From contig NIVC01002654.1 of assembly GCA_002269645.1 (NCBI GenBank), positions 1 through 64,000 of the forward strand: DNA of 64,000 bases, in the 5' to 3' direction. The stretch comes from Macrostomum lignano. Lineage: Eukaryota. The first letter of the stretch is position 1; every line of letters begins with the position of its first letter. The notes under the pieces are model-generated. The model had not been told where the DNA came from and searched no databases. It was given only the letters and a program-made list of their open reading frames with translations. This document shows, piece after piece, positions 12,451 to 64,000 of this stretch. Both the position numbers and the translations under genes were made by a program.

Positions 12451-12496
12451 CTGTGGAACAGGGATGAGACTAGAAATGAGTCTAGGAATGAAGTCT

Positions 12497-13620: not shown

Positions 13621-13631
13621 GGACGGCTCAC

Positions 13632-14102: not shown

Positions 14103-14389
14103 CTGATATTTGGAATTATAAGGGAGATTGCTTCACTGGTAAACACCTGTCACGGTTAGCACTTAGCAGTTTAGCTGCAACTGGAGGGCAAAGGCCCAAT
14201 CAGTTTACAGTACAGACAGAAATAATCTGTAAACGGACACAGACATGAACTCAGGGCAGACACAGACAAACTCAAAGTGGACACAGACAGACTCAGAGAA
14301 AACAGGCACACTCAGAACGGACAGACAAACTCGAAGTAGTCATAGACACACTCAGAGAGGACACAGACACTCAGAAAAGGAGAGGACAC

Positions 14390-15555: not shown

Positions 15556-15566
15556 TCCCAGCTCAC

Positions 15567-15717
15567 CGGTCCGAGTCCCGTTCCCATTGCAGTCGCCGCG
15601 GCCGCCGGAGCAGTCGGGGCAGGGCGCGCACTCCGGTCCCCAGCGGCCGTAGACGCAGCAGGCGGCGGTGCCGTTGACGCAGACAGAATCGCGCAGGCTG
15701 GCAGAGGTCGGGTTGGC
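15567..15717 (-). CDS. CRELD1: CRELD1-like, exon 2
   Basis: DSVCVNGTAACCVYGRWGPECAPCPDCSGGRGDCNGNGTRT; CAG/GTGAG sites; phase 0/1. Confidence 0.9.
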
Positions 15718-15944
15718 CTGCGGGAGAGATGCCCGAGTGTTTTGGATTTTTTGGTAATTCAATAAAAGAAGAGGCTGATGAGAAATCAGCTTTAGGTAAC
15801 GGACAAAAAGTCTGTCAAGTTTATATCCTCAAAGATTTTGATTGTAAAATTTCTGTATTTTTTATCACATCCAATGCTTAATAACATTTTCAAATATAAG
15901 ACATTCCTTAAATCCCGAGACACTCCTGACATTCCAAGAAATTT

Positions 15945-17090: not shown

Positions 17091-17303
17091 TTCAACCTGA
17101 GATAGCTCCCACATCCCAAGCATTTCCCACATCCCGGACACTTCTTACCTCATACAATTCAATGTCCCAGACATTTCTCACGTCCTAGAAAACTGCGGCA
17201 ACACTAGAAATTGCCGAACAAACCCCCGGGAAAACCTTTAAGTTTTTAAAATTGTTGAACGCTTCAAAACTTTGGCACAAATCCGAAATGAACTTTCACC
17301 AAC

Positions 17304-17669
17304 CTTGAAAGCGCCAAACCAGAACTTCTCAATGTCCTCTTCAATCTTCTCTAGCATAGCGTGACACTCGCTAGAGGTCACACCGTCCATCTCATTGTCT
17401 TTGTCCTTGCAAAGCCGGTCTGTGATGTCCACCAGCCGGGTCTCGCTGAGCGCATAGGTGCCCAGCCGGGTCTCCTCCCAGTTGGTGTTGCCGCCACCAA
17501 AGTTGTCCCGAGCGGTTCGCTCCAGGCCTCGCTGGAATGCGGCAGCAATGGCGCTGCACGCTCGGCATTGGGAGCTGAGCTGTTGAGAATCTGGGCTGCC
17601 TGATCGGGCCACATGGGATATGAGTGACAGCAACAGGCCTAAAGATGCCAGTTGGTGAATGAGTGGCAT
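17304..17669 (-). CDS. CRELD1: CRELD1-like, exon 1 (signal peptide and N-terminal DUF3456/WE region)
   Basis: MPLIHQLASLGLLL... CRAC ... ERTARDNFGGGNTNWEETRLGTYALSETRLVDITDRLC is the CRELD hallmark; 366 nt, phase-0 donor. Confidence 0.9.
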
Positions 17670-43132: not shown

Positions 43133-43426
43133 GGGGCCGTAGCCCAATGGTCCAGCGTGGTGCTCTGGTGTGCCAGCGGCCCAGGCTCGATTCCAAGTGC
43201 AGTCACATTAATTTGTGGCTCAATTTGATTCTCGGCTTGGCTCTGCTCGTGCTATTAACGCCATTGAGGGCCAACCCCCCAAGGCACAGTGAAGTGTACA
43301 TGCCTAACGATAATATAAAGTTAGGGCCGCTGTACACTCCTGTGTGAGTGAGTGCCTGTGCGTATGACTGCGTAAGTAATCCGGGCGCTTGTGTGCCTGC
43401 TCAGGAGAGTCAGCGGAATATGCAGT
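43133..43426 (+). mobile_element. tRNA-derived SINE family B, diverged and 3'-truncated copy
   Basis: GGGGCCGTAGCCCAATGG...GGCTCGATTCC head; body matches the 54530 and 59607 copies. Confidence 0.85.
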
Positions 43427-44420: not shown

Positions 44421-44597
44421 AGCTACATTGCCGATTGCGCGAAATTGCCGATATGTATCGAACCAACTTCATAAAGATCTATTTAAATATTCCTTATCCT
44501 TCAGCAGCCGGATGCCTGGCTAGGTCCTTCTCCCTTAACCGAGTGAAGGCACATCTGTCTTCGGCTCTCCGTGCACTGAAGCAGAGTGAGAGACGCC

Positions 44598-45401
44598 ATG
44601 TTGAAGCAAAGACTGCAACAAGAGCAACAGGGCGAGTCGCGTCAGTCAGCTGACGAGGAAGAGTTCAACTCTAATGAACCGCCCAGTGGCAGCTTCGCTT
44701 CGCACCAAGCGAGCTCGTCGTTCCAGCCGACTCCATTCGTGCTTGGCACCCATCAGTTCCTGCTGACGCCGCCGCCGCCTGGCGTCCAGCTGATGACGAT
44801 CCCAGCCTCGCTGGCCAGCTTGCCAGGCAGCGACCAGATCCCCGTGATCGCCACCTCCACTGGGCAGCTCATTCTCGCCAACATCGTCAGCGTGCCTCGC
44901 GGTGGCGGCAGCGGAGGCGCCGGTGAGGCGGCCGCAGCAGCCGCCGCAGCAGCAGCCGCAGCAGCGGCAGCCACGGGGAACTTCATGAGCCCAGCCGTAG
45001 CGGCGTTGGCTGCTCAGCAGCTGCTGTCGACCTCAACGGCTGCCTCGTCGACTTCAACAGCCGATGCTGGTGCATCGTCTAGCGACGAGATTCGACAGCA
45101 GCCGCTGTCAAACCCGACGCCACCCGCTGGCGAGGCCTCGGCCAATGACGAAGACTCCATTGAAGGTGGCGACGAGGATGAAGAGGGCGACGTGTCGATG
45201 GAGCGTCAGGATGACTCAGGAACTGCCGCTGTTGTCGCCGCTGCCGCCGTCTCGACCGACCCAGACGATGAGGCCAACAAGCACACAGTCAGTCAAATCA
45301 CCGATTCCAACGTGGTGGACGGCGTTGATCTGGAAGAAATTCGCGAGTTTGCTAAGCAGTTCAAGCTGCGCAGATTGAGCTTGGGACTGACACAGTCTCA
45401 G
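44598..45401 (+). CDS. POU6F2: POU class VI transcription factor, coding exon 1 (poly-Ala, acidic region, start of POU-specific domain)
   Basis: DGVDLEEIREFAKQFKLRRLSLGLTQSQ; GTGAGG donor, phase 0. The symbol denotes class (POU6/pdm3-like), not strict orthology. Confidence 0.88.
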
Positions 45402-45509
45402 GTGAGGATTGATGAAGCTGCAGTAGATTACTCAAGTGTTTCAGGGATCCTGCAGGATTGCTCAAATCGTTTAGTGCTGTTTAAGATTCACTTTGGGTAG
45501 TTCAGGAAT

Positions 45510-45945
45510 CATGGAACATCATTCAGGTAATTCAAGTATTGTTTAAAATCATTCAGGTTGTTCAGGGATCATTTAGAATCATTCAGGTTGTTCAGGTATT
45601 GTTTAAAATCATTCAGGTTGTTCAGGGATCATTTAGAATCATTCAGGTTGTTCAGGTATTGTTTAGAATAATTCAGGTTGTTCAGGAATCATTTAGAATC
45701 ATTCAGGTTGTTCAGGTATTGTTTAGAATCATTCAGGTAGTTCAGGGATCATTTAGAATCATTCAGGTAAGTTCAGGTATTGTTTAGAATCATTCAGGTA
45801 GTTCAGGGATCATTTAGAATCATTCAGGTAAGTTCAGGTATTGTTTAGAATCATTCAGGTAGTTCAGGGATCATTCAGATAATTATGGAATCATTTGGAT
45901 TATTCAGGTAGTTCAGGGATCATTTAGAATCATTCAGGTAAGTTC
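45510..45945. repeat. 30-bp minisatellite with alternating A/B units (60-bp dimer) in POU6 intron 1
   Basis: AATCATTCAGGTTGTTCAGGGATCATTTAG alternates with AATCATTCAGGTTGTTCAGGTATTGTTTAG. Confidence 0.9.
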
Positions 45946-46074
45946 AGATGTGACACGTATCATTTTGGAAGTCAAATTTGAAAAAATAAATTAGCGATAA
46001 TTCGGAGCCAACTGATATTAGGGTCAAGTTTCTTCACCAAACCATCTGGACTGAATCCCAATGTCAACCCTCAG

Positions 46075-46454
46075 GTTGGCGCAGCTCTCTCCGCAACCAA
46101 AGGCCCCGCCTACAGTCAGAGCGCCATCTGCAGATTCGAGAAGCTGGACATCACTCCCAAATCTGCTGCCAAGATCAAACCGGTCTTGGAGGTGTGGATG
46201 GCTGAAGCCGAGGAGAAATTTCGGCGATGCGGGGGCGGCGGATTGTGCGGATTACCTGATGATCCTCACCAGCTGCACCAGCAGCAGCAGCACCAAATCT
46301 GTCTCGGCTCCCTGGACGGCCTCAGCGCCGCCGAGGCTGCTAAAAAGCTGCGCAAACGAAGGACTTCGTTCACACCGACTGCATTGGAGATACTCAACGA
46401 ATATTTTGAGCAAAATACTCATCCAACTGGGGCGCAGATGACAGAGCTGGCTAG
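46075..46454 (+). CDS. POU6F2: POU class VI, exon 2 (POU-specific domain, linker, homeodomain start)
   Basis: VGAALSATKGPAYSQSAICRFEKLDITPKSAAKIKPVLEVWMAEAE...RKRRTSFTPTALEILNEYFEQNTHPTG. Confidence 0.95.
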
Positions 46455-46489
46455 GTGAGTCTGTCTGCATCCTCAGGCACCCTCATTGC

Positions 46490-46680
46490 ATCCTCAGTTG
46501 CTGGGCCAGCCTTCAGATCCCCAGTTGCTGGGCCAGCCTCCCAGATCCTCAGTTGCTGGGCCAGCCTCCCAGAGTGTCAGTTGCTGGGCCAGCCTCCCAG
46601 AGTGTAAGTTGCTGGGAAACCAGCCTCCATATTCCCAGTTGCTGGGCCAGCCTCCATATCCCCAGTTGCAGGGCCAGCCC
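46490..46680. repeat. 26-30-bp degenerate repeat (CAGTTGCTGGGCCAGCCTCC) in POU6 intron 2
   Basis: Direct reading. Confidence 0.85.
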
Positions 46681-46721
46681 CCTAATTAATAATGTAGCAA
46701 AACTTCCAAACTAAACCGCAG

Positions 46722-46992
46722 GTCCCTACGCTACGAGCGCGAGGTGATTCGAGTCTGGTTCTGCAACAAGCGCCAGGCTCTCAAGAACACTATTAAGCGT
46801 CTTCAGAGGCCGCAAGAATCTTCAGCTAGCAGGCAGCACCATCATCATCACCAGTCTCAGCTGCATCCGATGTCGCAGCAGCAGCTCCGAGCTCCCGATA
46901 TGTCAGATTCATCAGCTTCCTGTGCCACCACGTCCAAGGCTGCCGCCGCTGCAGCCGCATCCGTTGCTGTCGCTATCGATGAAAACCGACTG
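46722..46992 (+). CDS. POU6F2: POU class VI, exon 3 (homeodomain helix 3)
   Basis: SLRYEREVIRVWFCNKRQALKNTIK; phase 2 acceptor fits. The donor at 46993 is inferred from phase. Confidence 0.88.
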
Positions 46993-47021
46993 GTCAGACT
47001 GCGCTTGTTAGCTAGAAATTT

Positions 47022-47262
47022 TCACCCACACTGCACCCACATTCACCCACACTGCATCCACATTCACCCACACTGCATCCACATTCGCCCACACTGCATC
47101 CACATCCACCCACACTGCATCCACATTCACCCACACTGCATCCACATTCGCCCACACTGCATCCACATCCACCCACACTGCATCCACATTCACCCACACT
47201 GCATCCACATTCACCCACACTGTACCTAAATTCACCCACGCTGTATCCACATTTACCCACAG
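47022..47262. repeat. 21-bp minisatellite CCACACTGCATCCACATTCAC in POU6 intron 3
   Basis: 7-aa periodic (HPHCIHI)n translation. Confidence 0.9.
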
Positions 47263-48229: not shown

Positions 48230-49390
48230 TTGACCAACCCCACAACTCCTACCCCTCAGAATGTACATCGGACTTGACCAACCCCACAACTCCTACCCCT
48301 CAGAATGTACATCGGACTTGACCAAACCCACAACTCCTATCCCTCAGAATGTACATCGGACTTGACCAACCCCACAACTTCTACCCCTCAGAATGTACAT
48401 CGGACTTGACCAACCCCACAACTCCTACCCCTCAGAATGTACATCGGACTTGACCAAACCCACAACTCCTATCCCTCAGAATGTACATCGGACTTGACCA
48501 ACCCCACAACTCCTACCCCTCAGAATGTACAACCGACTTGACCAACCCCACAACTCCTATCCCTCAGAATGTACATCGGACTTGACGAACCCCACAACTC
48601 CTACCCCCCAGAATGTACAACCGACTTGACCAACCCCACGACTCCTACCCCTCAGAATGTACATCGGACTTGACCAACCCCACAACTCCTATCCCTCAGA
48701 ATGTACATCGGACTTGACCAACCCCACAACTCTTACCCCTCAGAATGTACATCGGACTTGACCAACCCCACAACTCCTATCCCTCAGAATGTGACATCGG
48801 ACTTGACGAACCCCACAACTCCTACCCCTCAGAATGTACATCGGACTTGACCAACCCCACAAATCCTACCCCTCAGAATGTACAACGGACTTTACCAACC
48901 CCACAACTCCTACCCTTCAGAATGTAAATCGGACTTTATCAACCCCACAACTCCTACTCCTCAGAATGTACAACGGACTTTACCAACCCCACAACTCCTA
49001 CCCTTCAGAATGTACATCGGACTTTATCAACCCCACAACTTCTACCCCTCAAAATGTAAATCGGACTTGATCAACCCCACAACTCCTACCCTTCAGAATG
49101 TACATCGGACTTTATCAACCCCACAACTTCTACCCCTCAAAATGTAAATCGGACTTGATCAACCCCACAACTCCTATCCCTCAGAATGTGACATCGGACT
49201 TGACGAACCCCACAACTCCTACCCCTCAGAATGTACAACCGACTTGAGCAACCCCACAACTCCTACCCCTCAGAATGTACATCGGACTTGACCAACCCCA
49301 CGACTCCTACCCCTCAGAATGTACATCGGACTTGACCAACCCCACGACTCCTATCCCTCAGAATGTACATCAAACTTAACCAACCCCCAA
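48230..49390. repeat. 44-bp minisatellite GACTTGACCAACCCCACAACTCCTACCCCTCAGAATGTACATCG, about 26 copies
   Basis: Direct reading. Confidence 0.95.
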
Positions 49391-49989
49391 AATTTCTACT
49401 CAATGTACATAAATGTTGACTAATGTATTCAAATGTATTATTTTTACCTAAAAGCAAATTGAATGTTTTGGCTTTTGTATTTTTACGAAACGCCCCATAT
49501 TAACAAGGTGTTTCCCCATTTGCTTAATTCACTCCTTACAATGCAAATTTATGGTTACATATTCTAAAAATTAATACCATTGTCCAAAAAGCCTCTTATG
49601 TTTATTTACTTCGACCTGTTATTGTCCGAAGCGCTATTGCTGTCCCTACTCTCTACTCTCTTCTGCTCTGACGCTGCATCTATGTCAATCATCGTAGTCT
49701 GACTGCAAAATTGTACCTGCATTTATGTATACCTTTTCTCTGCTGTATTTTAGAGCTTTTATCTGCGTAAGTACAGTTTGTGCGTATTCGCTGACTTTTA
49801 TCTACCGAGAAGCTGCAAATAAAATTTTATTTGGATTGACTGTCTGCAATGCACGTTTGATATTGTGTCCGTTGGCTGTCGCTTATTGTGAGTCACGTGT
49901 GCAAAAATAATCGCCTTCTTATGTAGTTGGTCATTTATTTTATAGGGCTAATTTAAATACACACAGCAACAAAACTATCCATTCTGTGC

Positions 49990-50650
49990 GCACAGCCACC
50001 CCTCTATCCCCAGAGTACGCACAATCACCCCTCTATCCCCAGAGTACACGCAGCCACCCCTGTATCCCCAGAGTACACGCAGCCACCCCTCTATCCCCAG
50101 AGTACACGCAGCCATCCCTCTATCCCCGAAGTACACGCAGCCACCCCTCTATCCCTAGAGTACACGCAGCCACCCCTCTATCTCCAGTGTACTCACAGCC
50201 ACCCCTCTATCCCCAGAGTACATACAGCCACCCCTCTATCCCCAGAGTACACACAGCCACCCCTCTATCTCCAGTGTACTCACAGCCACCCCTCTATCCC
50301 CAGAGTACACACAGCCACGCAGCCACCCCTCTATCCCCAGAGTACACGCAGCCATCCCTCTATCCCCAGAGTACACGCAGCCACCCCTCTATCCCTAGAG
50401 TACACGCAGCCACCCCTCTATCTCCAGTGTACTCACAGCCACCCCTCTATCCCCAGAGTACACACAGCCACCCCTCTATCTCCAGTGTACTCACAGCCAC
50501 CCCTCTATCCCCAGAGTACACGCAGCCACCCCTGTATCCCCAGAGTACACACAGCCACGTAGCCACCCCTCTATCCCCAGAGTTCACGCAGCTACCCCTC
50601 TATCCCCAGTGTACACACAGCCACCCCTCTATCCCCAGTGTACGCACAGC
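49990..50650. repeat. 29-bp minisatellite CAGCCACCCCTCTATCCCCAGAGTACACG
   Basis: Direct reading. Confidence 0.92.
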
Positions 50651-50978
50651 CCTGACGAACCAACACAGCCACCTCTTTATCGCCTTTAACAACAGCTTTG
50701 CAGCAACTTAACTTTTGGTTTTACTAATTCCAATCCGGAACCCTGTTTCAGCTGTCGATTGCTTTGTTTTCATATTGCACAGTTAATGACTGATAGTTAA
50801 TAAAAACAGCGTTACTAAATCTCCCAGGGCTACCCTGGACTCTGTCAACTATCACGACGAGACACGCTCGCTGACTAAAAGCAGCAACTGTAACAATAAT
50901 AAGAAGAATAAAAAGCGGCGAAAGCGCAGGCCACGCTACTATCAACGGACTGGTCGGGACAGCGACTCCGGTGCCAGC

Positions 50979-51131
50979 ATGCAGTCCAGCGTTCACGAGC
51001 AGCTCAGAGAGTATCGGGCTAAGAAGGAGGCGGAGCGGAAGAGGCAGCTGCTGAGTGGCCTGCTGCCGTTTGCTGGTAGCGGTTCCTCAGCCTCCGCTGA
51101 CCAGCAGGGAGTCGCCTGCGCGGCTGATGAG
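50979..51131 (+). CDS. SAYSD1: SAYSvFN domain-containing protein, exon 1
   Basis: MQSSVHEQLREYRAKKE resembles the SAYSD1 N-terminus (EQRLAEFRAARK); GT donor, phase 0. Confidence 0.8.
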
Positions 51132-51234
51132 GTTCGCGATTGCATCTAACAGCTGTTTCAGCATCTCCTATTTGAATTGATGCCATTTGTTTTTTGTATT
51201 TAATTGGACTCGAAATACGTCGTATTTAATGTAT

Positions 51235-51725
51235 CCCGTCGATCCCATCTCTGATCCCATACCCCACCAATCCCATACCCATTGATCCCATACCCATTGA
51301 TCCCATACCCCATTGATCCCATACCCATTGATCCCATACCCATTGATCCCATACCCCATTGATCCCATACCCATTGATCCCATACCCCATTGATCCCATA
51401 CCCATTGATCCCATACCCCATTGATTCCATACCCCATCGATCCCATACCCCATCGATCCCATACCTCATCGATCCCATACCCCATCGATCCCATACCCCA
51501 TCGATCTCATACCCCATTGATCCCATACCCCATTGATCCCATACCCCATTGATCCCATACCCCATTGATCCCATACCCCATCGATCCCATACCCACCAAT
51601 CCCATGCCCCATCGATCCCATGCCCATCGATCCCATGCCCATCGATCCCATACCCCACCAATCCCATGCCCCATCGATCCCATACCCCATCGATCCCATA
51701 CCCTATCGATCCCATGCCCAATTCC
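51235..51725. repeat. 16-17-bp minisatellite GATCCCATACCCCATT in the SAYSD1 intron
   Basis: Direct reading. Confidence 0.92.
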
Positions 51726-51833
51726 ATTAGTCTTATACCCCATGGATCCCAAACAATATCGCTTCCTTTCACCATGAATCCATTTTTATAGCATTTAAAA
51801 ATCCCCATTAAATCGCAACCCCCAAAACCGCAG

Positions 51834-52163
51834 GCTCGCGCGCCCAGCCGCTGGTCACGGCTCTGCACCCGGCTCTACCTGTTGCTACCCGAGCGAGTTC
51901 GCGCCCACCGCCTCGTTGCCATGGGCTGGCCAGTCCGGCTCGGCGTCTTCCTGCTGCTGTGGCTGTACTTTGTCTACATCGAATGGGGCGCCGTGTTCTT
52001 CATTTGCGGCCTCTTGTACCTACTGGTGAGTAGTATGCGCGGAGACAGTCAGAGGCGCTCCGGGCCGAGTGCCTATTCGGTGTTCAACCGGAACTGCGAA
52101 CGGCTGGATGGCACCTTCACTGCGGAAGAGTTTGACAGGTCACTGAGGTCCGGCTTTTCTTAG
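51834..52163 (+). CDS. SAYSD1: SAYSvFN domain-containing protein, exon 2
   Basis: Hydrophobic LLLWLYFVYIEWGAVFFI, then SAYSVFNRNCERLDGTFTAEEFDRSLR*. Confidence 0.95.
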   Translation, partial: ARAPSRWSRLCTRLYLLLPERVRAHRLVAMGWPVRLGVFLLLWLYFVYIEWGAVFFICGLLYLLVSSMRGDSQRRSGPSAYSVFNRNCERLDGTFTAEEFDRSLRSGFS

Positions 52164-52309
52164 GGGGTGCTTTGGGCTATGGTTTATGTTGAAATTGTTT
52201 CTTTGTTGTTTTCAAGGTTTTCAGTTGGTGGTGTTATTAATGGTGGTAGGACAGTTTTGCTGGTACCTGAGAATTTTTCCCGATCAAATATTTGGCATTC
52301 ATTAGATGT

Positions 52310-52790
52310 CAGAATTTACCTGTCAGGTGTCAGATTATACCTGTCAGGTGTCAGTCTGTATCTGTCAGGTGTCAGTCTGTATCTGTCAGGTGTCAGTCTG
52401 TATCTGTCAGGTGTCAGTCTGTATCTGTCAGGTGTCAGTCTGTATCTGTCAGGTGTCAGTCTGTATCTGTCAGGTGTCAGTCTGTATCTGTCAGGTGTCA
52501 GTCTGTATCTGTCAGGTGTCAGTCTGTATCTGTCAGGTGTCAGTCTGTATCTGTCAGGTGTCAGTCTGTATCTGTCAGGTGTCAGTCTGTATCTGTCAGG
52601 TGTCAGTCTGTATCTGTCAGGTGTCAGTCTGTATCTGTCAGGTGTCAGTCTGTATCTGTCAGGTGTCAGTCTGTATCTGTCAGGTGTCAGTCTGTATCTG
52701 TCAGGTGTCAGTCTGTATCTGTCAGGTGTCAGTCTGTATCTGTCAGGTGTCAGTCTGTATCTGTCAGGTGTCAGTCTGTATCTAACGATG
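52310..52790. repeat. Nearly perfect 21-bp minisatellite TGTCAGGTGTCAGTCTGTATC, about 22 copies
   Basis: (GVSLYLS)n translation with essentially invariant units. Confidence 0.97.
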
Positions 52791-53029
52791 TCGGGTGTCA
52801 GACTGTTATTAGAGTCAGTGTTTACAATCTTATAACTGATTTGCCACGACAAATGCAGTCAATATAAAACAGTCTGATGTTCATTTCTGTGATAAGTTTA
52901 AATTTTTTGTTCCAAAGTGTTCTTTAATGTATATTATATGTAAGTTCATTAATTTTACGTGCCAATCAGCAGCTAAGTTATATATTTTCATCAAATTTTC
53001 TTCCTTGGCAATACATTTGCTAACCATAC

Positions 53030-53830
53030 TACTTACGGCGCGCATGTTTTGTTGCCTTTCATTATTGTCGGATTTGTGACATTTTGTACATTATATTAAT
53101 CAGATAAGATAATATGTAACATAGATGAATACTTCAGTACTGATACCCCTGCGTCCCGTCAGTAAATTAAAGAACAAACGAAACACCTTATCAACAAAAA
53201 TTTGCTCCGAGATTTTCAATGGCTTTTTAATTTTTTCTCAAAATTTTTGGTAAATTTTTCGCTATATTTTCGATATTTTCGATATTTCGATATTTTTTGA
53301 TATTTTAACAAAAGCCACATTTTTGGTAGATCTATTACTTTGAGGATTAATTATTGTTAGTCAGATAAGTGAATGATAAATAATTCAGAGGAATTATTCC
53401 TAGTCTCAGATCAACTTGAAGAAAAGAAATCTTTTAAAAGTTCTGATACATGAAAAGTTAAATAGAGTTAGAAAAGTAGGACAATCAGATACTAAGCTAC
53501 TAATATATAAGTAGTATAATTTACTGACGGCGCACATGTTTTGTTTGCCTTTCATCATTGTCGAGTTGTGAAATTTTATACACAAAACTTTATGTTCAGA
53601 TAAGATATTACGAGCAATGTGCTTGAGTAAAATCAACAACAAACAAAATACTATTTCATCAATATCATTTTTGCTCCGAGATTTTCAATGGATTTTCAGT
53701 TTTCACTTTTCAAAAGTTCTGAGTAACAAAAGCCACACTATAAAGAGAGTAGATTTATTACTTTGAGGATCGATTTTTGTTACTCAGATAAGCTAATGAT
53801 AAATAATTCAAAGTAAATATTCGACAGAAG
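53030..53830. repeat. Diverged tandem duplication of an AT-rich unit of about 470-490 bp
   Basis: Shared blocks ACGGCGC(G/A)CATGTTTTG, TTTGCTCCGAGATTTTCAATGG, AACAAAAGCCACA and TTACTTTGAGGAT recur in order. Confidence 0.75.
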
Positions 53831-54427
53831 TAGGATTTCGGGTTAGTACCCATATAAATTTGAAAAGAAAACACCTTTAAAAAATTCGCTGATAAAACTT
53901 AAGAACAGTTCAATTAGAGTTAAAAAGTAGGGTGGGTAATAAGCTACTAAGTAGTATCAAATATTAGCGTTCCTTTTTTAAGGACTTTGTTAGCTCGTTT
54001 GTCAGTCGTAAATAGACGTGAAAACTGTAAAAACACATATTTGGCTAGACTAAACAACAAAATGTCATAGCATTACCCACGCCAAGGACTACGAGTACTA
54101 AAAAACTCCGGACGCTGAATTTAAACTTGGTAGGAACTTTTCTTTCAAGGCCCGCCAGAAAGCATTCTCCATAGTAAAAGTATCTACTAGATGGCGATTT
54201 TATATGTGAATTGCAACGTTTGAAGTTGTGTTGCTTGTAGGAAAGTGTATATAAAGTCCTTGATCCAGGATTAAAGGGGTGGGTAACGGATTTATCACTT
54301 CGCTCAGGGAAACAGATTGCCGCAAGCTGTCTATGGTAGTTTGGCAAAGTTTTTTACTTGTTCTTGCATTCGCGAGGAAGATAAATATAGATCATATGTA
54401 GATCTTCCTGACTGCAGCCTTGATTGA

Positions 54428-55465
54428 TCACGGCAGGCTGAACTTCACCCAGTCGGCGCTTGTCTCGATCTCCTCCTCCACCTGAGCGTCGGTGAACAGC
54501 AGCAGGCGGCAGGTTCTCAGCTTGCTGTTTTTTTTTTTTAGAGGCAGGGGGTCTGTGTGCACCCTGGCGCACTTTAGGCGACATTGGCACACAACCGGCG
54601 AGAGGCATTACTGCCCATTCCGCCGACTCCCCTGAGCAGGCATACAAGCGCGCGGATACGTTACGCAGGCACACACTCACACAGGAGTGTACAGCGGCCC
54701 TAACTTTATATTATCGTTAGGCATGTACACTTCACTGCGCCTTGGGGGGTTGGCTCTCAAGGCCGTTAATTGCGTTAATTGCACGAGCAGAGCCAAGCCG
54801 AGATTCCAATTCAGCCCCAAATTAATGTGACTGCACTTGGAATCGAGCCTGGGTCGCTGGCACACCAGAGCAGCTGCGCTACCGCTGGGCTACGGCCCCC
54901 CTACTTGCTGTTGTACAGCACGTGTCTGCAGCGGCTGCCCGGCTCGCGCATGGCGGCAGCCACGCAGTGCATCAGGCTCCGCACCTGCTGCAGGTCGGTG
55001 AAGCAGTACTGGGAGCTGGGGTTGTAGCTCGTGCGCTTGAACGGAGTTCGCTTCCAGGCAGCTTCAGTGGCGCGGGTCAAAGGCGTCTCGGCAGCACCAG
55101 TAAATTCGCAGGCGTAGCCCAACAGATCAGAGTAGACTCTGTCCGACATCTCTCCATAAGAGGATGTTCCAATGCAGTCTTGACCTATCTGTGTTTCTCT
55201 CATCGGCCAGGTCAGTGACGCCGAGCCACATTTTGCAATTGCAGCTGAAGCTCGGCATGCTGCCCAGCAACTGCAGCGAGCTGTACGAGTTGATCAGCTC
55301 GCCTCCGAGTAGCTGGCATTGTTGATTAGCCGAGCACCAGCTGTGGCTTTGAGCTGTGCTCACGAACACGCACTTGCCGGCCTCGAGGTTGAACGGAGCG
55401 GGGCACAACTGAGCTGCAACTGTGAGCAGCAGCTTTGCCAGGGTAGCTAGGGTGACTAGCAGCAT
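54428..55465 (-). pseudogene. Secreted C-type-lectin plus PAN-like domain gene, disrupted by a frameshift/deletion and a SINE insertion
   Basis: Signal peptide, CPAPFNLEAGKCVF...WCSANQQCQLLGGEL...WLGVTDLADE, frame break near 55180, then YACEF...CRHVLYNSK [SINE] LRTCRLLLFTD...FSLP*. Confidence 0.75.
54530..54903 (-). mobile_element. tRNA-derived SINE family B, full length, poly(A) tail, 9-bp TSD
   Basis: A box TAGCCCAGCGG and B box GGCTCGATTCC; TSD AACAGCAAG (54521-54529 and 54904-54912). Confidence 0.92.
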
Positions 55466-56305
55466 CTTCACAATTCGATGCTCCATACAGTTGTTGTGCT
55501 TCGACTAAGGCACTTACAGAGACTTCAGTGTTTGAAGCGAAATATGCAGCAATTTCCAATGACTAATAGTCTGAAGGCCGCAATTCTGAAATGCAGTGCG
55601 GTGCTTGCTCTGCAAAACTTTAAGTCTCTTAAGAATTTGGGTTCACTACATGAAAGTTTCACTCCACCACCCCACATCTCTTGTATCGATTGGTGATGGT
55701 GAGGGTTAAAATGAAGTGGCATATTCAACCCCGTGCGATGCTGCTTTAAGGCTGCAACAGAGTAAAACACAAGAAATGGGGGCGGGTAAAACTTGTCTTC
55801 ACGGTCACCTACAAAAAATTCAGATAGCTCGTATTTCCTCACTCGTCTTTCGCAGAGCAGAAGGCTATTGTCCTGAGTATTCAGCAGGGCTGTTACATAC
55901 TCAAGTGGTGAAAAAAGAATTCGTAGGCGTCCTGTATTAGAGTTTGTTAATCGGATATAGTAGTTACTCCGTCATCAAGTAAATATTACACGTAGATCGA
56001 ATGCATGCAGCAACATGCATTTCTGGTAGGATTTCTATGTGCGTGTTAATACTCTGATCAGGAAAGTTCTATCGACTGAAAAGGCACGCTTGTTATTGTT
56101 GCGAAATTCATCGGGTAATGTATTGATTTTTCACTGGAACTTCTCAACTTCTAGTACAGACGTGGAACTCGTGGGTCGGTATTCCTTTCTCAAAGACCAT
56201 TGGTAGATATTAAGGCTTACATGAACATATTGTTAGTTCATAAAAGCTCGATCAGTCAACCTGCATCAGAAATCTTTTCCAACATACTCGTACATGTACC
56301 AATTA

Positions 56306-56354
56306 CTGTTTCCGGACGCACGGAGCCCCCTGCAGCTAAATCAAGTAAGTCAAG
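56306..56354 (+). mobile_element. Extremely 5'-truncated copy of the same LINE as 16161-16605
   Basis: CTGTTTCCGGACGCACGGAGCCCCCTGCAGCTAA(A/G)TCAAGTAAG matches 16563-16606 with one mismatch. Confidence 0.8.
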
Positions 56355-58511
56355 GTATGTTAGATTATTTGGTGGTTTAGTTGCATCATTAGGTTTTTAC
56401 AGCATTTTACATTGTTTATCGATTGGGACCCTGGAGCCTAAACTTCGAGGAGCAGTTAAGGCAGGGATCTTAAAACACTGGCCCACTGCCCGCGAAGCTT
56501 TTCTATCCAGTCCATGAAACTTCACAATAGCAATCCGATTTGCTTAAGGTTTGTCTTTTTTGTGTCTAAAAGCTGAGAGCTCTTCTCTTTTCCCGCTTCT
56601 CCTCTCTCCTAACCTCTCCTCTCCTCTCCCTTCTCCCATTTATCCTCTCAACTACCCTCTCTTTGTTTCTACCCACGTCTTCCTTCTCTTCTCTCCCCTC
56701 CTCTCTCTGGCCCGTAGTCATGCTCCAGATTTTGTATATATTAGGCCTTTATAGGTTAAAAAGTTTGCCTGCCCCTGAATTAGGGTTTGCCAATTTGTCT
56801 GTGGTCGCAACGAAATGTCTATCACTCCAACCCCAGACGAATCGATCATCGCTGATCAGGTGAGGATTTCAGAAGTTGGCCATAGACGCCTGCGTAGGAC
56901 TTAGAAATCCACGGGCCTAAGAAATGGGCTACGCTGCAAAGGAAGCCAAGCCGGGGATCGTCAACTATAAGTGAAGAAGTGAGGCCAGGATTAAAAGTAT
57001 AAAGCTGGGCTCAAGACGAAAGATGAAGTGAATAAATGAAACAATAGACACGAAAGCAACCAAGTGTGACAAAACTACAGCGCAGCCACCATCCATTCCA
57101 GACAGAAGACAAAGGCGAGACGGTGACTTAGGGCGATGAGGTTGACAGGCGAGGCCAGTCAGAAGAGTGATGAGCGCAGCACGTGGGCGGCCCGGGAGGA
57201 GCAGCGGGAGCGCCCAAGACCGACGGGCCAACCCCAAGGAGCGAAGCAACCAAGGGGATGGACCTGCGGGCGGGCCCACGCACAAGACAGGGCTCCCCTT
57301 AGCGCTCTAGCCTCTAGCTCAACCAAGGCAAAATTGCAAGCACCAACTCATCCACCCTCGCCCACGTAGCAACATACCAGTTTAATGGTAGCCACCCGGC
57401 CCATCGGTGGCGACGAAAATGTTAATCTAAGTGCTTATAATAATAGTCGTTTTGTTTTAATCTTTAACAACTGTAATATTTATAACCTGAAGTTTGTCTT
57501 AATGCTAATCTTGCCGTTGCTCAAAAAAGGCTATTAAATAGAGGCAAAATTAAAAAGCGACAGGCCTAATCTAAAGTTTTTCAAGTAAATATTAAGAATC
57601 ATGTTCAAGAATTCGTGTTGACATTTCGAAGAGTGAAATAGAAGGAAAACATATCGTATGTACTACTGGTAAGTAGAATACTGAGGAGGCGATCGAAATG
57701 AAACGAAGTAGATCTCGGAGTTACATGATCCCTGAGGTTAAATACCCTAGATTACTGTAAGATATTTAAAAGAAGAAATACATATTAAGAGATTCCAGGC
57801 CTGTAAAAGAATTGATCCTGCACTCGGAACATAGTAAGAACGCGACCAGTAAGAAGTAAGAAATTACTCAGACAGACAAAGACTAATGCTCGAAGGAATA
57901 TCTAAAAGAGACAAAATATTTACTAGAGTATTTTTGCTTAACTATTTGTTTAAAGATTGAAGGTCCAACTGAAGAGACTCACTAGACTAGGAGAAATCCG
58001 ACTTGACTGCAAGGCTTCCAGCGTACCGCTGAGCAAAATTAAAAACAAAGAAGTATAGTCACGCCGGAGACAAAAGAGGTCACAAGTTGTCTTTGTCTTA
58101 AAGTTGACTTCATAAGCTACGAACTTGATGCTGTCTACACGTAGAAAATATATATAAGAAGGCTAAATCACAGTGGTTCCTTTTGGTAGACAATTCCTTA
58201 TCTGTCTTAAATGTATAAATGAGTTCGATAAAATATATTTTGAAAGTAAAATCGGTATAGACTTCAGCTGATGGCAATAAAATTGTAGAAAGCAATACTA
58301 GCAAAAATAGATCTGAGCGGCAAATTTGGTATAAAACACGGCTTCTTAAATTTCAGTTTTGTGAGCTTAAAAATATTTATAAAGGAACAAAATGACCATC
58401 TTTGAGGCAACGTTAGGCACCAGAAGTTAGTAAGATACTATGTCTAACTAAAGTATTAGTTATCTTGGATGTTTTTTGAAGCTTAGTACTAAAAAATTAT
58501 GATTAATATCT

Positions 58512-58618
58512 CTAGGCATCTGCGCCCTTCATCAGCAGCAGCCAGTGGGCCAAGAACTCAATCGGATCAGCTGGTCGCGCGTCGGCAACTCTGGCCAAGC
58601 CTCTGGACAGGACGGCGC
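58512..58618 (-). CDS. NWD-like protein, last exon encoding a Dpy-30/DYDC-type motif
   Basis: TTTTAG acceptor, phase 1; (R)AVLSRGLARVADARPADPIEFLAHWLLLMKGADA*. Confidence 0.75.
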
Positions 58619-58917
58619 CTAAAAGTTTCATTAAAGTAAAATATAATCAAAAAGATTTCTAATGCTTTTTAATAAATCATATATTTATATAAACTGTTTA
58701 TTTGTTTTAAAACATTCTGCAAACAAAACCGATGCTACACCTAGAAATTTGACTGCTAAGTTTTCTGAAGGTGAATGTTTTTTTGAGTCTGGATCAACAA
58801 ATTTTCAATAAATTTGCATATCGGACTGCAATCGTCACTTTGTATTTAATAAATAATACTGAACCTACGCACAATGATGCATGCCCCCAATACACTATTA
58901 TAGTGGGTATTACTCAC

Positions 58918-59149
58918 GAACATAGCTAAGGTAGTCGCGTTGTAGGTAATCGTTAATCGGTTTCGGATTTCTGTTATTTAACAACGCCTGGTGACTATCG
59001 GTGTGTTTTGTCTGCAGAATTTCGTACACCTGCACCGGATGGTCTCGAAGCAAGACGACAAGTCTGTTGGGGCTCGGAGACATGAGCAGCACTGGCTCCT
59101 CCTCGAATAGATAGTTGAATAGCAGAGAGCCGTCCAGGAGGGAGAAGGC
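58918..59149 (-). CDS. NWD-like protein, penultimate exon (phase 0/1)
   Basis: AFSLLDGSLLFNYLFEEEPVLLMSPSPNRLVVLLRDHPVQVYEIL...DYLQRDYLSYV; CACAG acceptor and GTGAGT donor. Confidence 0.72.
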
Positions 59150-59229
59150 CTGTGGATGTTTGAGTTGGTTGATTAAACATACAGAACACTGACTTTAAGA
59201 CTAGATATGAATCCTAAAGTAGAGGTAGG

Positions 59230-60355
59230 ACACACTGCAACCCGATAACTGGACTCACTGCAACTCGATGACTGGACACACTGCAACCCGATGACTGTGG
59301 ACACACTGCAACCCAATAACTGAACTCACTGCAACCCAATAACTGAATTCACTGCAACCCGATGACTGTGGACACACTGCAACCCAATAACTGAACTCAC
59401 TGCAACCCAATAACTGAATTCACTGCAACCCGATGACTGTGGACACATTGCAACCCAATAACTGAACTCCTGCAACCCGATGACTGGACACATTGCAACC
59501 CGATGACTGGACACATTGCAACCCGATGACTGGACACACTGCAACCCGATGACTGTGGACACACTGCAACCCAATGACTGTGGACACACTGCAACCCGAT
59601 GACTGTTATTATTACAGGCAGGGGGGTTGTGTGCACCCTGGCGCAATTTAAGCGACATTGTCACACAACCGGCGAGAGGCATTACTGCCCATTCCGCCGA
59701 CTCCCCTGAGCAGGCATACAAGCGCGCGGATACGTTACGCAGGCACACACTCACACAGGAGTGTACAGCGGCCCTAACTTTATCAATTGTTAGGCATGTA
59801 CACTTCACTGCGCCTTGGGGGGGTTGGCTCTCAAGGCCGTTAATTGCACAAGCGAGCCAAGCCAAGATTCCAATCCAGCCCCAAATTAATGTGGCTGCAC
59901 TTGGAATCGAGCCTGGGTTGCGGCACACCAGAGCAGCTGCGCTACCGCTGGGCTACGGCCCCCCCCCGATGACTGTGGACACACTGCAACCCGATGACTG
60001 GACACATTGCAACCTAATAACTGGACACTGGACACACTGCAAACCGATGACTAAACACACTGCAACCCCATGACTAAACACACTGCAACCCCATGACTAA
60101 ACACACTGCAACCCCATGACTAAACACACTGCAGCCCGATCACTAAACACACTGCAACCCCATGACTAAACACACTGCAACCCGATGACTGTGGACACAC
60201 TGCAACCCCATGACTAAACACACTGCAACCCTGACTAAACACACTGCAACCCGATCACTAAACACACTGCAACCCCATGACTAAACACACTGCAACCCGA
60301 TGACTGGACACACTGCAACCCGATGACTGGACACACTGCAACCCGATGCCTGGAC
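59230..60355. repeat. 21-23-bp minisatellite GGACACACTGCAACCCGATGACT in the NWD-like intron, split by SINE B
   Basis: Direct reading. Confidence 0.92.
59607..59965 (-). mobile_element. tRNA-derived SINE family B, full length, (TAA)n tail, inserted in a satellite
   Basis: Same head and body as 54530-54903; flanked by CGATGACTGT on both sides. Confidence 0.9.
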
Positions 60356-60421
60356 ACATTGTAACCAAAGACAGGTAGCATTCTAACAAAAAACTGAACA
60401 GTCTTGATCCGCCAAACTCAC

Positions 60422-61042
60422 CTGCAGAATTCTCTGACCATCCTGCATCAGGTCCTCCTCTGTCCCATCCTCCTGATCTCGATTGCTCCACCTTTGCCCC
60501 AAGGCGAGCCTTCGTCCAATAAGTACGGAACCGTCCATCGCCAACAGCATGTCCTTCAGCACCACGGCGTTGGTTGGGTCAAGATCGCGAACTGTTTCTC
60601 CAGTCTGGACGCTGACAATCTTCATCCGGTAGGTAACGCAGCGCTCACCATCAGGCAGGAGACACAGAATCCCAGAGTCGAAGGTCTTGCTTACGGATAC
60701 AACTCCCAGGTTAACATCGTAGGTCACGAGCTGACCAGGCCAGCACATGACCTCGCGGTGAAGAGCTCTGGCGTGGCTTTCAATACCTACGCATCGGTAC
60801 TGAACGATCACGTGACCCGGATGTCCTGGTCGAGCAAACAACATCTCCGGTTGACAATGATCGTCGTGTTTCAGTTTCAGAGAAAATTGCAGCACCAGTT
60901 GAAGCCCGTTCTGGGCTAGACAGAGCATAGCGGCTGACACCTTGGATGAGTCGCCGCCTGCCGCTTGAGTCAGCAACTCGGACAGCTTCGGTACGATCTC
61001 AGCGGCCAGTGGGGCGCCACTTTCCTGGTCAACTGAGCTTTC
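60422..61042 (-). CDS. NWD-like protein, next exon (621 nt, phase 0/0)
   Basis: TTGCAG acceptor and GTGAGT donor; open 207 codons with beta-strand-rich character. Confidence 0.8.
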
Positions 61043-61229
61043 CTGCAAAGGAAAGTAGAGGGACTGAGTTATGTTTAGATAGGAAGTTCAAGATCAAACT
61101 GAATCTGGCTTAGTAAGACTCTGGTTTGGACTCAAGACTACGAGTAAAAATCCCGTGTTTGTGAATTACTCATTCGTGAAAATTGACTCAATGATATTAC
61201 AATTAGGCTGTATCTGCAACCAAACTCAC

Positions 61230-63950
61230 CAGGTACTCAGCAATCTTCAATCGCAGCAGCTCTCTAGCCTGGCTGATTGCAAATTTGTTTAGCTCCAGTT
61301 CGCCTTGCGACCCGCCGTCCTTGGCAACTGCCAGGTCGAGGCGCGCATCCGCCTGCGCCAGATCGCTGGCAGCTGCGCGCATCGCTTCAACTGCAGCTCG
61401 GCGAGTTGCATAACTTAAAAATGCCTCACCGATCGGAAGTTTCGACGGCAGTTGCGGCGCTTTCAGGCGTTCAATACGGCGAGTAAGTAGATCAGCGCAC
61501 AGAATCTGGACAGTTTTCTTCAACAGTAGAAACATTTGACCTTTGTCGCTGGATAGAACTCCGAAATAGTCGGAAGCTTCATCAAACATAGGCGGTCTGT
61601 GCTCATCTTTGGCCAACAGGTACCCCACTGGTAGCGAAGTGAACTGGGGGTGATTTGTGATTATTACCGTCAACTCTGTGCGGCTTGGATCGATCGAGTT
61701 TGAGTCAACATCAAACAGAGTTCCATTGGTCAGTGTCGTGGACTCCGAGTCTACCAGACGCATGCCCAGATACCTTGGATCGTGCACTAAAACCAGATTA
61801 ACGCATTTCAATTCGTCCCAATTCTCATTGTAGTCCTTGAGAAAGGGATCTAGATGCTTAACGAAATCATCTGCGGTGTTATCTTCGGGTTTGGATTCTT
61901 CAGCTTTCTCAGAACCTTTTAGGTAATTATCTTCGTCCTCCTCCGCGAAGACTCCCATAGCATCAGAAGCGTTGCTGCTGTCTTTGCCTCTGATATCGAT
62001 TACAATGCGACTCCTTCCAGTTCCAAAGTCTACTTCCACCGCTTGTCCTTGATTGACTTGCTGGTCGTAGAATGATGAAATCATTTTACCAGATTGACCA
62101 GGGCGATATGCAAATAGACCCTGTTTTATCATTTTAGTGCTGATCTTCGCCTTATCAAAGTCGCCTATGGAGGCCTGCAGAGCGGACAGTTTCAGTATCT
62201 TCAGGTGCACCCACGAGTCATTGGTAACTGATTCATCCGGGAGCAAGTTGATCGCCAAGAAGTCTGTGCCGCTAGGCTGGCCCAGGCTGTAGAATTCGGA
62301 ATTTCCAGTTAAAGTGCGCAGAAAACTGCCATCTCTGGCGGACCATAGGTTTAACATGCAGCCAGATCTGCCTTTTGAGAGCAACAAGTCACCATTAGAA
62401 CTGATGAATAGAGAGTCCATCAGAGGCGCTATTTCCTTACTGTCGTCCTGGTCTAAATTGTGCGTCTCCTCTAGCACTGAATGGTAGGACAGCTGTGCGG
62501 ATGAACCGTCGCAGAGGTTGCAGACAAAGCCCATACCGCTCTGCACCGGTGAGCGAAACATCAGAGCAGCTGTTCCACCATCTGCGGACAGTACTATGCT
62601 AAACTCGTGGTTTGCATCGGTCGCTGGACGGATTAACTTCCAGAAAGCACTTTTGTGTACTTCTTTACTATTGATGGTGAAGCAGTGCACACTAAATGCT
62701 ACGCTGTGTGAAGCATTCTCTGGCCCCTCTGTGCGTGTGATGATGAGAAGCTTTCCGTGCAAGACGAACGGGCAAAACGACTGGAACTGTGAATTCAGAG
62801 CTCGTTCTGTCAGCTCAGGACAGCCCAGCTCGACTTCAGTACAGTACTTATCAAGAATAAGAAGACGTGGAACGTGGGCTGGAGGTCCAGTGGCATCATG
62901 ATCTGAAAACAACTCGGAATGTCCTACAAAGAACAAGAACTGATCGCCGTTCAATATCGGGCCCTCCCAGCGCGATTCGCTAGCCAGTAACCGAACCAAA
63001 TGTAGCGGTTCAGGTCGCAACAAATAGAAAGGTGTTCTCGAAGCTGACTCTGACGTTTTCTTTCTAAGAACGAGGTGTTTGTCTGATGCAGCGTAAACTA
63101 GGTTGTCACCAGACTCGGCTGCCGCCAGAGCAATCTCACCGGGCAAAGAGTCCATGACGACTCGCCAAGCTCCAGTGTGCAAATTCGTTTTGAATATTTT
63201 GTAAGTTTTGTTGTCGTTGGGATCCTCTTTAGCAATGGAAAGATAGCAGCCACTCGGCTGGAGAGTCCGCATATGACGCAGATGAATATGCAAAAGCACT
63301 GGACTTTGGCATTCAATTTTCTTCAGTTCGTTGCCCTCATGATCGAACCACCAAACAGTTCCGTCTAAACGGTCGTCGAGTGACACGGCGTATATTTGGC
63401 CTGACTCGCAGAGCATACCGAGGGCCAGCTGCACCTGCACAGTGCACTGGGTGAAGCTGCTGCCGCTATCGAAGCAGCTGTTCAGCGGTAGGATTCGAGC
63501 TGTACTGGCGTTGTCGTCCCGACAGCCGTTCAGAAGGCGCTGAATATTGCGCGACTCTTCCGCAAAGTGACGCAGGCGGCCGCACAAGTCGACAGCGAGG
63601 GCCAGGGAGCTGTGGCCAAGGCTGAGAGACGCCACGCGGATTGCGTTGAACACTCGTTCCGCGTCAACTGCTGCATTCCAGTCACCTTTTTCGGACTCGT
63701 TGAGGTCTAGAAACAAGCGCAAGTCCCTCATCAGCTGGTAGCGAGACGAACTGGTCAGCCTAGCCTCCAGGTGAACCACATTGAAGGTCACTTCGCGATG
63801 GAATTCTTCAATACGACCGCTGCGTACCAGATGATAGGGCAGTTCGCTCAGCTTCCTCAGGTTTAGCCGTCTGCTTCCATCGGCCTGCATCTGCAGAGTG
63901 TGTGGCTGCGCTGCCACTTGTCTGTCCGCTTCAGTCGGTGGCGCAATGCC
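61230..63950 (-). CDS. NWD1/NWD2-like (NACHT and WD-repeat type) protein, 2721-nt exon: post-NACHT helical region and divergent beta-propeller
   Basis: DRQVAAQP...NLRKLSELPYHL...LAVDLCGRL...ILPLNSCF is typical of the NWD post-NACHT region; WD-like LNLWSARDGSFLRTLTG; TTTTCAG acceptor and GTGAGT donor, phase 0/0. The NACHT itself is not in the window. Confidence 0.8.
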
Positions 63951-64000
63951 CTGAAAATTTCAGCAATTTTTTTGGCTTAAAGTGCTTTCTACGACTAAAG

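Follow-up and report, generated by a model that had tools for sequence, protein, structure and literature searches.

STAND NTPases such as Apaf-1, the NLRs and NWD1 are usually divided into three parts: effector, NTPase and sensor. Their cellular placement is poorly understood, and the functions of NWD1 and NWD2 are only partly known. Mouse Nwd1 combines DUF4062, NACHT and WD40 (PMC7186558). The flatworm protein described here, from Macrostomum lignano, has in common with the NWD family DUF4062, a NACHT with Walker A GSGKTS, an NWD1-type winged helix, a helical domain and predicted beta-propellers. It differs in these propellers, which are too diverged for Pfam WD40, in an acidic disordered stretch, in a helical insert (in Macrostomum) and in a C-terminal Dpy-30 motif, the latter lacking in the sampled long non-flatworm NWD-like proteins. 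With Apaf-1-type STAND switches it shares the general plan in which an effector and an NTPase are followed by a propeller as sensor (PMC7186558), but the NTPase is NACHT/NWD instead of NB-ARC, the effector is a DUF4062 and a putative docking module is added beyond the sensor.

Dpy-30 dimers bind amphipathic helices of ASH2L and AKAP95 (PMC8339350), and spoke proteins containing Dpy-30 domains are bound by helices of RSP3 (PMC3494852). The motif of the M. lignano protein has the features found in DPY30, DYDC1/2, NME5/NDK5 and Chlamydomonas RSP2: a helix-loop-helix of ~40 residues with the signature ...RP.DPIEFLA..L, attached through a flexible linker to one end of the protein. By analogy, dimerisation and binding of an amphipathic helix would be expected of it as well. 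In contrast to these proteins, the motif is carried here by a STAND NTPase of ~2000 residues, a partner absent from the Dpy-30 literature that we found.

Gene model and NWD-family identity

The stretch of DNA analysed (the window) comprises positions 1 to 64,000 of M. lignano contig NIVC01002654.1. Segment 58512-63950 of its minus strand corresponds to the last four coding exons of BOX15_Mlig012608g3, a gene encoding a protein of at least 2051 aa (GenBank PAA56199.1, 2051 aa). Ten coding exons are annotated in this gene, and those in the window include the seventh, eighth, ninth and last (Table 1). The first-pass annotation had proposed four phase-consistent exons with canonical splice sites, and both coordinates and junctions proved exact. 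An AG acceptor precedes every exon (2721, 621, 232 and 107 nt), and a GT donor follows all but the last. Once the exons are joined, a single frame stays open for 1226 codons, its sole stop lying at the end; the remaining two frames contain 63 and 66 stops. Over all its 1226 residues, this model matches the C-terminal part of PAA56199.1 at 100% identity, and window positions 48512-64000 are 100% identical to the contig of PAA56199.1. The annotation to which PAA56199.1 belongs was derived from RNA-seq and transcriptome assemblies (PMC5730564). The predicted C-terminus is ...EFLAHWLLLMKGADA*; the C-terminal peptide quoted earlier is indeed present, but it stops seven residues short of this true end. 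Since the TAG stop lies at 58514-58512, the start coordinate 58512 was right.

Table 1. Features of the 3' part of BOX15_Mlig012608g3 in the window, in the direction of transcription.
Feature	Position	Strand	Description
Intron, 3' end	63951..64000	-	joins the large exon to the NACHT/WHD exons; upstream exon ends ~46 bp past the window edge
Coding exon 7, large	61230..63950	-	AG acceptor, GT donor, open frame; PAA56199.1 residues 826-1732
Intron, 187 bp	61043..61229	-	GT..AG ends
Coding exon 8, 621 nt	60422..61042	-	remainder of helical insert and first blades of the C-terminal WD40-like region
Intron, 1272 bp	59150..60421	-	two 23-bp satellite arrays either side of a ~374-bp interspersed repeat
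Coding exon 9, 232 nt	58918..59149	-	last propeller beta strands, flexible linker, first Dpy-30 helix
Intron, 299 bp, phase 1	58619..58917	-	GT..AG ends; splits the Dpy-30 motif after ...SYVR
Last coding exon, 107 nt	58512..58618	-	second half of Dpy-30 motif (58618-58536), 7-residue tail, TAG stop

No NACHT was detected by Pfam in the window-encoded protein or its sub-segments; the NACHT exons are located beyond position 64000 of the same contig. The distance given in Table 1 for the upstream exon comes from the extracted locus, in which window position 64000 is position 13353 and the preceding coding segment ends at 13307. In full-length PAA56199.1, Pfam detected DUF4062 (PF13271) at residues 92-190 (34.7 bits, cut-off 24.7), NACHT (PF05729) at 448-626 (36 bits, cut-off 26.7), including the Walker A motif GCSGSGKTS, and the HTH_NWD1 winged helix (PF25469) at 670-781 (54.5 bits, E=1.4e-14, cut-off 27). 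The designation as an NWD-like STAND protein was therefore correct, as these three domains, among them a NACHT upstream of the window exons, are encoded by the upstream exons.

Comparison with other phyla agreed with the domain content. In a search with the NACHT-WHD part, the best cross-phylum matches bore the names NWD1 or NWD2-like, the lowest E being 1e-105. An hhalign comparison with NWD2-like proteins gave a probability of 100% over a stretch that begins where NACHT ends and reaches the first propeller blade, and the first ~200 residues of the large exon align with NWD1/NWD2-like proteins from many phyla. In an unbootstrapped NJ tree, the flatworm sequences form one clade adjoining spiralian NWD2-like sequences; a monogenean member of the family carries the NCBI name NWD1. 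By sequence, the product of BOX15_Mlig012608g3 is thus an NTPase of the NWD branch of STAND proteins, within a flatworm clade.

Predicted propeller region and helical insert

The product of the large exon comprises the post-WHD helical domain, followed by a putative, degenerate beta-propeller region, a disordered linker of acidic character and the first part of the helical insert. Pfam gave no WD40 or propeller domain above threshold in the window protein or its sub-segments, and at the sequence level the propeller region was matched by flatworm proteins only. Using phmmer, a few WD40 proteins matched residues ~485-546 of a 1197-residue query (~507-568 of the model). The region was modelled with AF2, and the two models reached only moderate confidence (mean pLDDT 61 and 69). 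The large part was predicted to form helices at residues 1-120 and beta strands at 127-630 of a 1200-residue query, and its top Foldseek matches were tandem WD40/beta-propeller proteins (E ~6e-9, probability 1.0). The model of the C-terminal part matched the WD40 domains of DCAF1, TLE1, WDR5 and RACK1 (E ~2e-5, probability 1.0). With hhalign, the alignment stopped at the first blade, and the C-terminal propeller could not be linked to Beta-prop_NWD2_C. These models suggest that the propellers of PAA56199.1 are strongly diverged WD40-like domains, interrupted by the acidic disordered stretch and the helical insert.

A helical segment at the end of the large exon had previously been put forward as a possible further interaction surface. 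AF2 does predict a long helix here (...FLSYATRRAAVEAMRAAASDLAQ..., encoded at window positions ~61330-61420), with Ala-/Met-rich hydrophobic periodicity, but at a pLDDT of ~45-55. It is kept in the M. lignano paralogues P0002, P0003 and P0014 and is absent or unalignable in paralogue P0016 and in trematode orthologues. Its conservation is limited to a Macrostomum-specific subclade; thus, the family as a whole is not characterised by it. The periodicity of the helix and its retention in this subclade would fit a Dpy-30 tail that binds an amphipathic helix within its own family, resulting in autoinhibition if binding occurs in cis or in head-to-tail STAND chains if it occurs in trans. We consider such binding quite improbable: the helix is predicted with low confidence and, being missing from proteins in which the tail persists, it cannot be the ancestral partner.

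The Dpy-30 tail and its candidate partners

The assignment of the C-terminus to the Dpy-30 motif was borne out by Pfam. In the whole 1226-residue model, PF05186 matched residues 1184-1219 with 38.7 bits (E=8.2e-10), and in full PAA56199.1 residues 2009-2044; the 55-residue tail by itself scored 45.2 bits (E=7.3e-12), for a gathering cut-off of 22 bits. AF2 predicted two helices, at 244-269 and 274-288 of a 290-residue query, with pLDDT values of 79-89, i.e. a helix-loop-helix. The preceding linker had pLDDT values below 50, and its length differs from one paralogue to another, which would suit a docking module on a tether. As had been proposed, the large open reading frame and the Dpy-30 exons are parts of one gene: the joined sequence is identical to PAA56199.1, and the body of the protein is physically linked to the motif by the single exon 59149-58918, which spans both parts (Dpy-30 part, 58942-58918).

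A phmmer search of the PDB returned DYDC2, DPY30, DYDC1, NME5 and RSP2 as the best solved-structure relatives of the tail. The match to human DPY30 reached 24 bits, with 38 residues aligned. As DPY30 is a COMPASS subunit binding ASH2L (PMC8339350), this alignment could be taken to mean that the tail recruits the protein to nuclear COMPASS/ASH2L-type complexes, or that it is a plain homodimerisation device without a partner. Both are improbable, because the rest of the protein bears no hint of a chromatin function and a fold that forms such a groove usually binds a helix.

Flatworms are heavily ciliated, and the best structural match of the tail is DYDC2 from the axoneme structures 8j07 and 8wzb (E=1.8e-5, 28 bits, 26 residues covered). 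The tail might therefore anchor the ATPase to an RSP3-type AKAP helix of the radial spoke in motile cilia, like RSP2, NDK5/NME5 and DYDC1/2, a proposal in line with the binding of Dpy-30-domain spoke proteins by RSP3 helices (PMC3494852). However, the DYDC2 match is barely above that of DPY30 and covers those 26 residues only, the helix bound by a Dpy-30 dimer is not readable from sequence alone, and the gene is named in no paper that we found. A ciliary location of the protein is plausible by analogy, while docking on this particular type of helix appears unlikely.

Altogether, the locus is probably best explained as encoding a flatworm NWD STAND switch with a Dpy-30 tail for pairing and docking. 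From N- to C-terminus, the layout is DUF4062, NACHT, the NWD1-type winged helix, the helical domain, the diverged, predicted propellers, the flexible linker and Dpy-30. We infer pairing and docking from established Dpy-30/RIIa domains and STAND proteins. Two Dpy-30 tails would pair into a four-helix bundle, which would hold two STAND molecules together at their sensor ends, and an anchoring partner would supply the amphipathic helix on which the groove of the bundle docks. Nucleotide-dependent oligomerisation of NACHT and the DUF4062 effector end could in this way operate at one defined place in the cell. The tethered Dpy-30 at the sensor end would serve as a handle, since the helix that it binds would tell where the switch works.

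A further-reaching version of this pairing-and-docking model, which we hold to be doubtful, is that flatworms have made an NWD STAND switch into an anchored one, with the Dpy-30 tail holding on to an AKAP-like helix in the radial spokes of the axoneme or in some other scaffold, so that oligomerisation driven by nucleotide would be tied to one set location in cilia or sensory cells. If so, the protein would be the first example of a STAND NTPase whose place is set by a docking-and-dimerisation domain and, as parasitic flatworms conserve it, a lineage-restricted signalling node.

Distribution in flatworms, gene copies and introns

The same collinear architecture was found in at least four further paralogue groups of M. 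lignano. The Dpy-30 match was significant in paralogues P0002, P0003 (Mlig013297), P0014 and P0016, and the paralogues sharing the collinear fusion are 38-44% identical. Trematode orthologues (Calicophoron, Schistosoma) possess a divergent Dpy-30-like end that keeps the invariant Y..V..RP.DP..L, with matches of 15-16 bits that are under the Pfam threshold of 22. Presence of the motif was scanned with a family Dpy-30 HMM against 101 proteins, and none of the limited sample of long non-flatworm NWD-like representatives had a Dpy-30 end. The NACHT-WHD search returned proteins of up to 1091 aa only, whose C-termini are uninformative on Dpy-30 in other phyla. The NACHT/NWD plus Dpy-30 arrangement therefore appears, within this limited sample of other phyla, to be found only in flatworms.

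The first-pass annotation had regarded the architecture as new. No paper describing it was found: searches for NACHT or NWD1 together with Dpy-30, and for Mlig012608, returned none, and the phrase "NACHT and WD repeat" was absent from the top-ranked papers when combined with flatworms. The architecture is nevertheless that of a conserved flatworm family, already deposited in GenBank and UniProt under automatic labels. Relative to the partner domains in the literature found, the Dpy-30/RIIa docking fold gains a new one here. The family is expanded in M. lignano, which is amenable to transgenesis, and kept in schistosomes and rumen flukes; it is therefore experimentally tractable and apparently lineage-restricted.

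Two sister copies of the window gene (g3) were compared with it. In copy g1 (NIVC01001381.1), the frame of the WHD region contains a TGA, and the large exon is interrupted by a 9-kb insertion that lacks GT/AG ends. Values of dN/dS in the recent copies are 0.5-0.8 (0.52 for g1 vs g3, g1 being a decaying copy; 0.8 for g2 vs g3, with 18 differences only). Such features might be expected if the gene were a decaying pseudogene copy or the exon join an annotation artefact, but this is scarcely credible. Indeed, the reading frame of g3 is uninterrupted for 2051 codons and that of g2 for 2096, the fusion is collinear in the diverged paralogues and in trematodes, with intron positions shared with a paralogue, and one exon runs from the end of the propeller into the first Dpy-30 helix. 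Clear purifying selection was not seen among g1, g2 and g3; thus, we argue constraint from deep conservation alone.

Both introns flanking exon 59149-58918 are at equal positions in Mlig013297, a 38%-identical paralogue: the 1272-bp intron lies between Q and A (..Q, A..), and the 299-bp intron is matched between ...QHIR and ALLG.... The 187-bp intron is absent from this paralogue, of which residues 756-1920 form one coding block. In the 1272-bp intron, the satellite arrays were located by TRF at 59228-59605 and 59979-60366. No tRNA was found by ARAGORN in the ~374-bp intronic repeat, further copies of which are present at 54532-54901 and 43133-43426.

Gene model and NWD-type identity

The four minus-strand exons at 58512-63950, once joined, gave 1226 open codons with one stop, at the end, while the alternative frames contained 63 and 66 stops. 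This single open frame and the AG/GT borders confirm the exon junctions of the first-pass annotation, but the peptide end it gave, ...HWLL*, was wrong: the gene model ends ...EFLAHWLLLMKGADA*. Database searching retrieved Macrostomum lignano proteins only, and a cluster look-up led to PAA56199.1 (BOX15_Mlig012608g3; 2051 aa, 5'-partial), whose C-terminal 1226 residues are identical to the gene model. Its contig, NIVC01002654.1, and window positions 48512-64000 were 100% identical over 15,489 bp, which places the window at positions 1-64,000 of this contig. The annotated CDS comprises ten coding segments; the last four lie inside the window, and the nearest upstream coding exon ends ~46 bp past position 64000. 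Because the deposited annotation was made by mapping RNA-seq data and a de novo transcriptome onto Mlig_3_7 (PMC5730564), the exon joins are indirectly supported by transcripts.

Coordinates of coding exons, protein domains, predicted structural regions and neighbouring features
Feature	Position	Strand	Evidence or remarks
Exon, first of four in window	63950-61230	minus	AG before, GT after
Exon, second	61042-60422	minus	AG before, GT after
Exon, third	59149-58918	minus	AG before, GT after
Exon, last	58618-58512	minus	AG before; TAG stop at 58514-58512
DUF4062	PAA56199.1 residues 92-190		Pfam, above cut-off
NACHT	PAA56199.1 residues 448-626		Pfam, above cut-off
NWD1-type winged helix HTH_NWD1	PAA56199.1 residues 670-781		Pfam, E=1.4e-14, above cut-off
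Dpy-30	PAA56199.1 residues 2009-2044		Pfam, above cut-off
Helical domain	1-120 of 1200-residue model		AlphaFold2
Long all-beta region	127-630 of 1200-residue model		AlphaFold2
Acidic disordered stretch	between 127-630 and 816-934 of 1200-residue model		AlphaFold2
Four long helices	816-934 of 1200-residue model		AlphaFold2, low confidence
Second all-beta region	943-1132 of 1200-residue model		AlphaFold2
Linker, then two terminal helices	after 943-1132 of 1200-residue model		AlphaFold2, linker low confidence
POU-specific domain fragment	ORF 44586-45500	+	E=7e-7
Homeodomain	ORF 46186-46458	+	E=1e-7
His/Pro-rich repeat, after homeodomain	~46950-47229	+	
SAYSvFN-domain exon (PF10260)	51882-52163	+	E=2e-22

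Pfam matched neither NACHT nor WD40 in the window-encoded protein; the NACHT looked for upstream of the window exons is present in full PAA56199.1. For the NACHT-WHD-helical region, the search gave short proteins only, and the best cross-phylum relatives (from a monogenean, a hemichordate, molluscs, a sea cucumber and corals) are named NWD1 or NWD2-like by NCBI, with E down to 1e-105. Profile-profile comparison with spiralian NWD2-like proteins reached 100% probability from the NACHT end to the first propeller blade. Mouse Nwd1 is described as combining DUF4062, NACHT and WD40 (PMC7186558), and PAA56199.1 likewise has DUF4062 and NACHT. Given the full-protein domains, the NWD1/NWD2-like relatives and the profile match, PAA56199.1 is, judged by its sequence, an NWD-like STAND protein, as had been proposed.

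The Dpy-30 tail and the extent of the fusion

The C-terminal Dpy-30 motif noted earlier was borne out by Pfam (PF05186; gene-model residues 1184-1219, 38.7 bits, E=8.2e-10, gathering score 22); the 55-residue tail alone scored 45.2 bits. Its closest solved relatives are DYDC2 (axoneme structures), only narrowly ahead of DPY30, then DYDC1, NME5 and RSP2. The last intron interrupts the motif, leaving parts at 58942-58918 and 58618-58536.

That these exons belong to the large-ORF gene is indicated by the third exon, which by itself runs from the last beta strands through the linker into the first Dpy-30 helix, and by paralogues and orthologues. At least four other M. lignano paralogue groups, P0002, P0003 (Mlig013297), P0014 (Mlig032501) and P0016, are collinear from DUF4062 through a significant Dpy-30 end. 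In Mlig013297 (38% identical), the two introns that flank and split the motif have unchanged positions in the protein (...Q|A... and ...R|A...). Full-length trematode orthologues (Calicophoron daubneyi CAL8080693.1, Schistosoma spindale CAI2730300.1) have divergent Dpy-30 ends, below the Pfam threshold (15-16 bits, E ~0.01), with Dpy-30 the only family matched; the invariant Y, V, RP, DP and L are retained in the family alignment. A family-specific Dpy-30 HMM, run against 101 proteins, matched within the flatworm family only, and in none of the long NWD-like representatives of other animals among them. In a rough NJ tree, a single clade holds all flatworm sequences, with P0016 beside the parasites and the window gene inside a Macrostomum-specific expansion. 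dN/dS among very recent genomic copies was uninformative. These sequence comparisons indicate that the NACHT/NWD and Dpy-30 fusion is real, conserved and, as far as sampled in a limited set, flatworm-restricted.

The family sequences are already public under the automatic labels "hypothetical protein" and "NACHT domain-containing protein", and Dpy-30 is among their precomputed Pfam hits. Among the papers searched, none paired NACHT or NWD1 with Dpy-30 and none carried the gene's identifier; NACHT is not named in a superfamily-wide survey of docking domains.

Beta-rich body and proposed mechanism

Searched exhaustively with phmmer, 1.84 billion representatives yielded only 73 proteins at E<=0.001. 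Past the first ~220 query residues, matches came from flatworms only, barring a few WD40 proteins matching one repeat-like stretch (query residues ~485-546). Pfam called no WD40 between winged helix and tail. The AlphaFold2 model of 1200 window-encoded residues (mean pLDDT 61, moderate confidence) resembles tandem-propeller WD40 proteins in Foldseek (E ~6e-9), and that of the last 290 residues (pLDDT 69, moderate confidence; Dpy-30 helices 79-89) resembles the WD40 domains of DCAF1, TLE1, WDR5 and RACK1 (E ~2e-5). As Foldseek finds WD40 propellers but Pfam no WD40, the "WD" part of the NWD-like label appears, from these predicted models, to hold at the fold level only. The helical segment suggested as a further interaction surface is indeed predicted as helix, at low confidence, but is conserved only within a Macrostomum subclade; since P0016 and the trematodes do not conserve it, it cannot be the tail's ancestral partner.

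The four-helix bundle formed by a Dpy-30 dimer binds amphipathic helices, such as those of ASH2L in COMPASS, AKAP95 and radial-spoke RSP3 (PMC8339350; PMC3494852). In STAND proteins the NTPase domain drives oligomerisation, with the effector N-terminal and the sensor C-terminal (PMC7186558). The linker before the tail is flexible and length-variable (family alignment; low AlphaFold2 confidence). By analogy, we infer for the NACHT/NWD and Dpy-30 combination that the tail, on its flexible linker, would join two molecules through their sensor ends, and that the paired tails could dock both onto a helix-bearing anchor.

Sister copies and neighbouring sequences

Sister copy g1 (BOX15_Mlig012608g1, NIVC01001381.1) has an in-frame TGA at 9589-9591, where other copies encode Arg (PPFI[R]VPPL, winged helix), and a 9.0-kb insertion in the large exon (11411-20410) without GT/AG ends, which the deposited annotation takes for an intron. 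As a result, the protein annotated for g1, PAA68612.1 (1206 aa), begins at an internal Met and has no NACHT; g1 is probably a decaying copy. The window gene (g3) and its sister g2, both intact, differ at 18 nucleotides over the whole CDS, all 18 in the last 1226 codons (3' 60%) and 0 in the first 825; gene conversion or recent recombination may have homogenised the 5' half.

Intron 2 (59150-60421) consists almost entirely of two 23-bp satellite arrays (59228-59605 and 59979-60366), with an interspersed element of ~374 bp in between, at 59606-59979. This element recurs at 54532-54901 (92%) and, on the opposite strand, at 43133-43426 (84%). ARAGORN called no tRNA in this element, though its 5' part is tRNA-like.

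A POU-class homeobox gene occupies 44586-47229 (+). At 49986-51870, a minisatellite of ~100 bp with strong GC skew gives rise to long repetitive ORFs, proline-rich and glycine/tryptophan-rich on opposite strands (e.g. ...TPLSPEYTQPSLYPQSTRSHPSIPRVHAA... repeats). The SAYSvFN exon is directly followed by a long perfect tandem repeat (52300-52850; ...VSLYLSG... repeats in ORF translations), and the homologous locus on NIVC01001381.1 contains two SAYSvFN genes.
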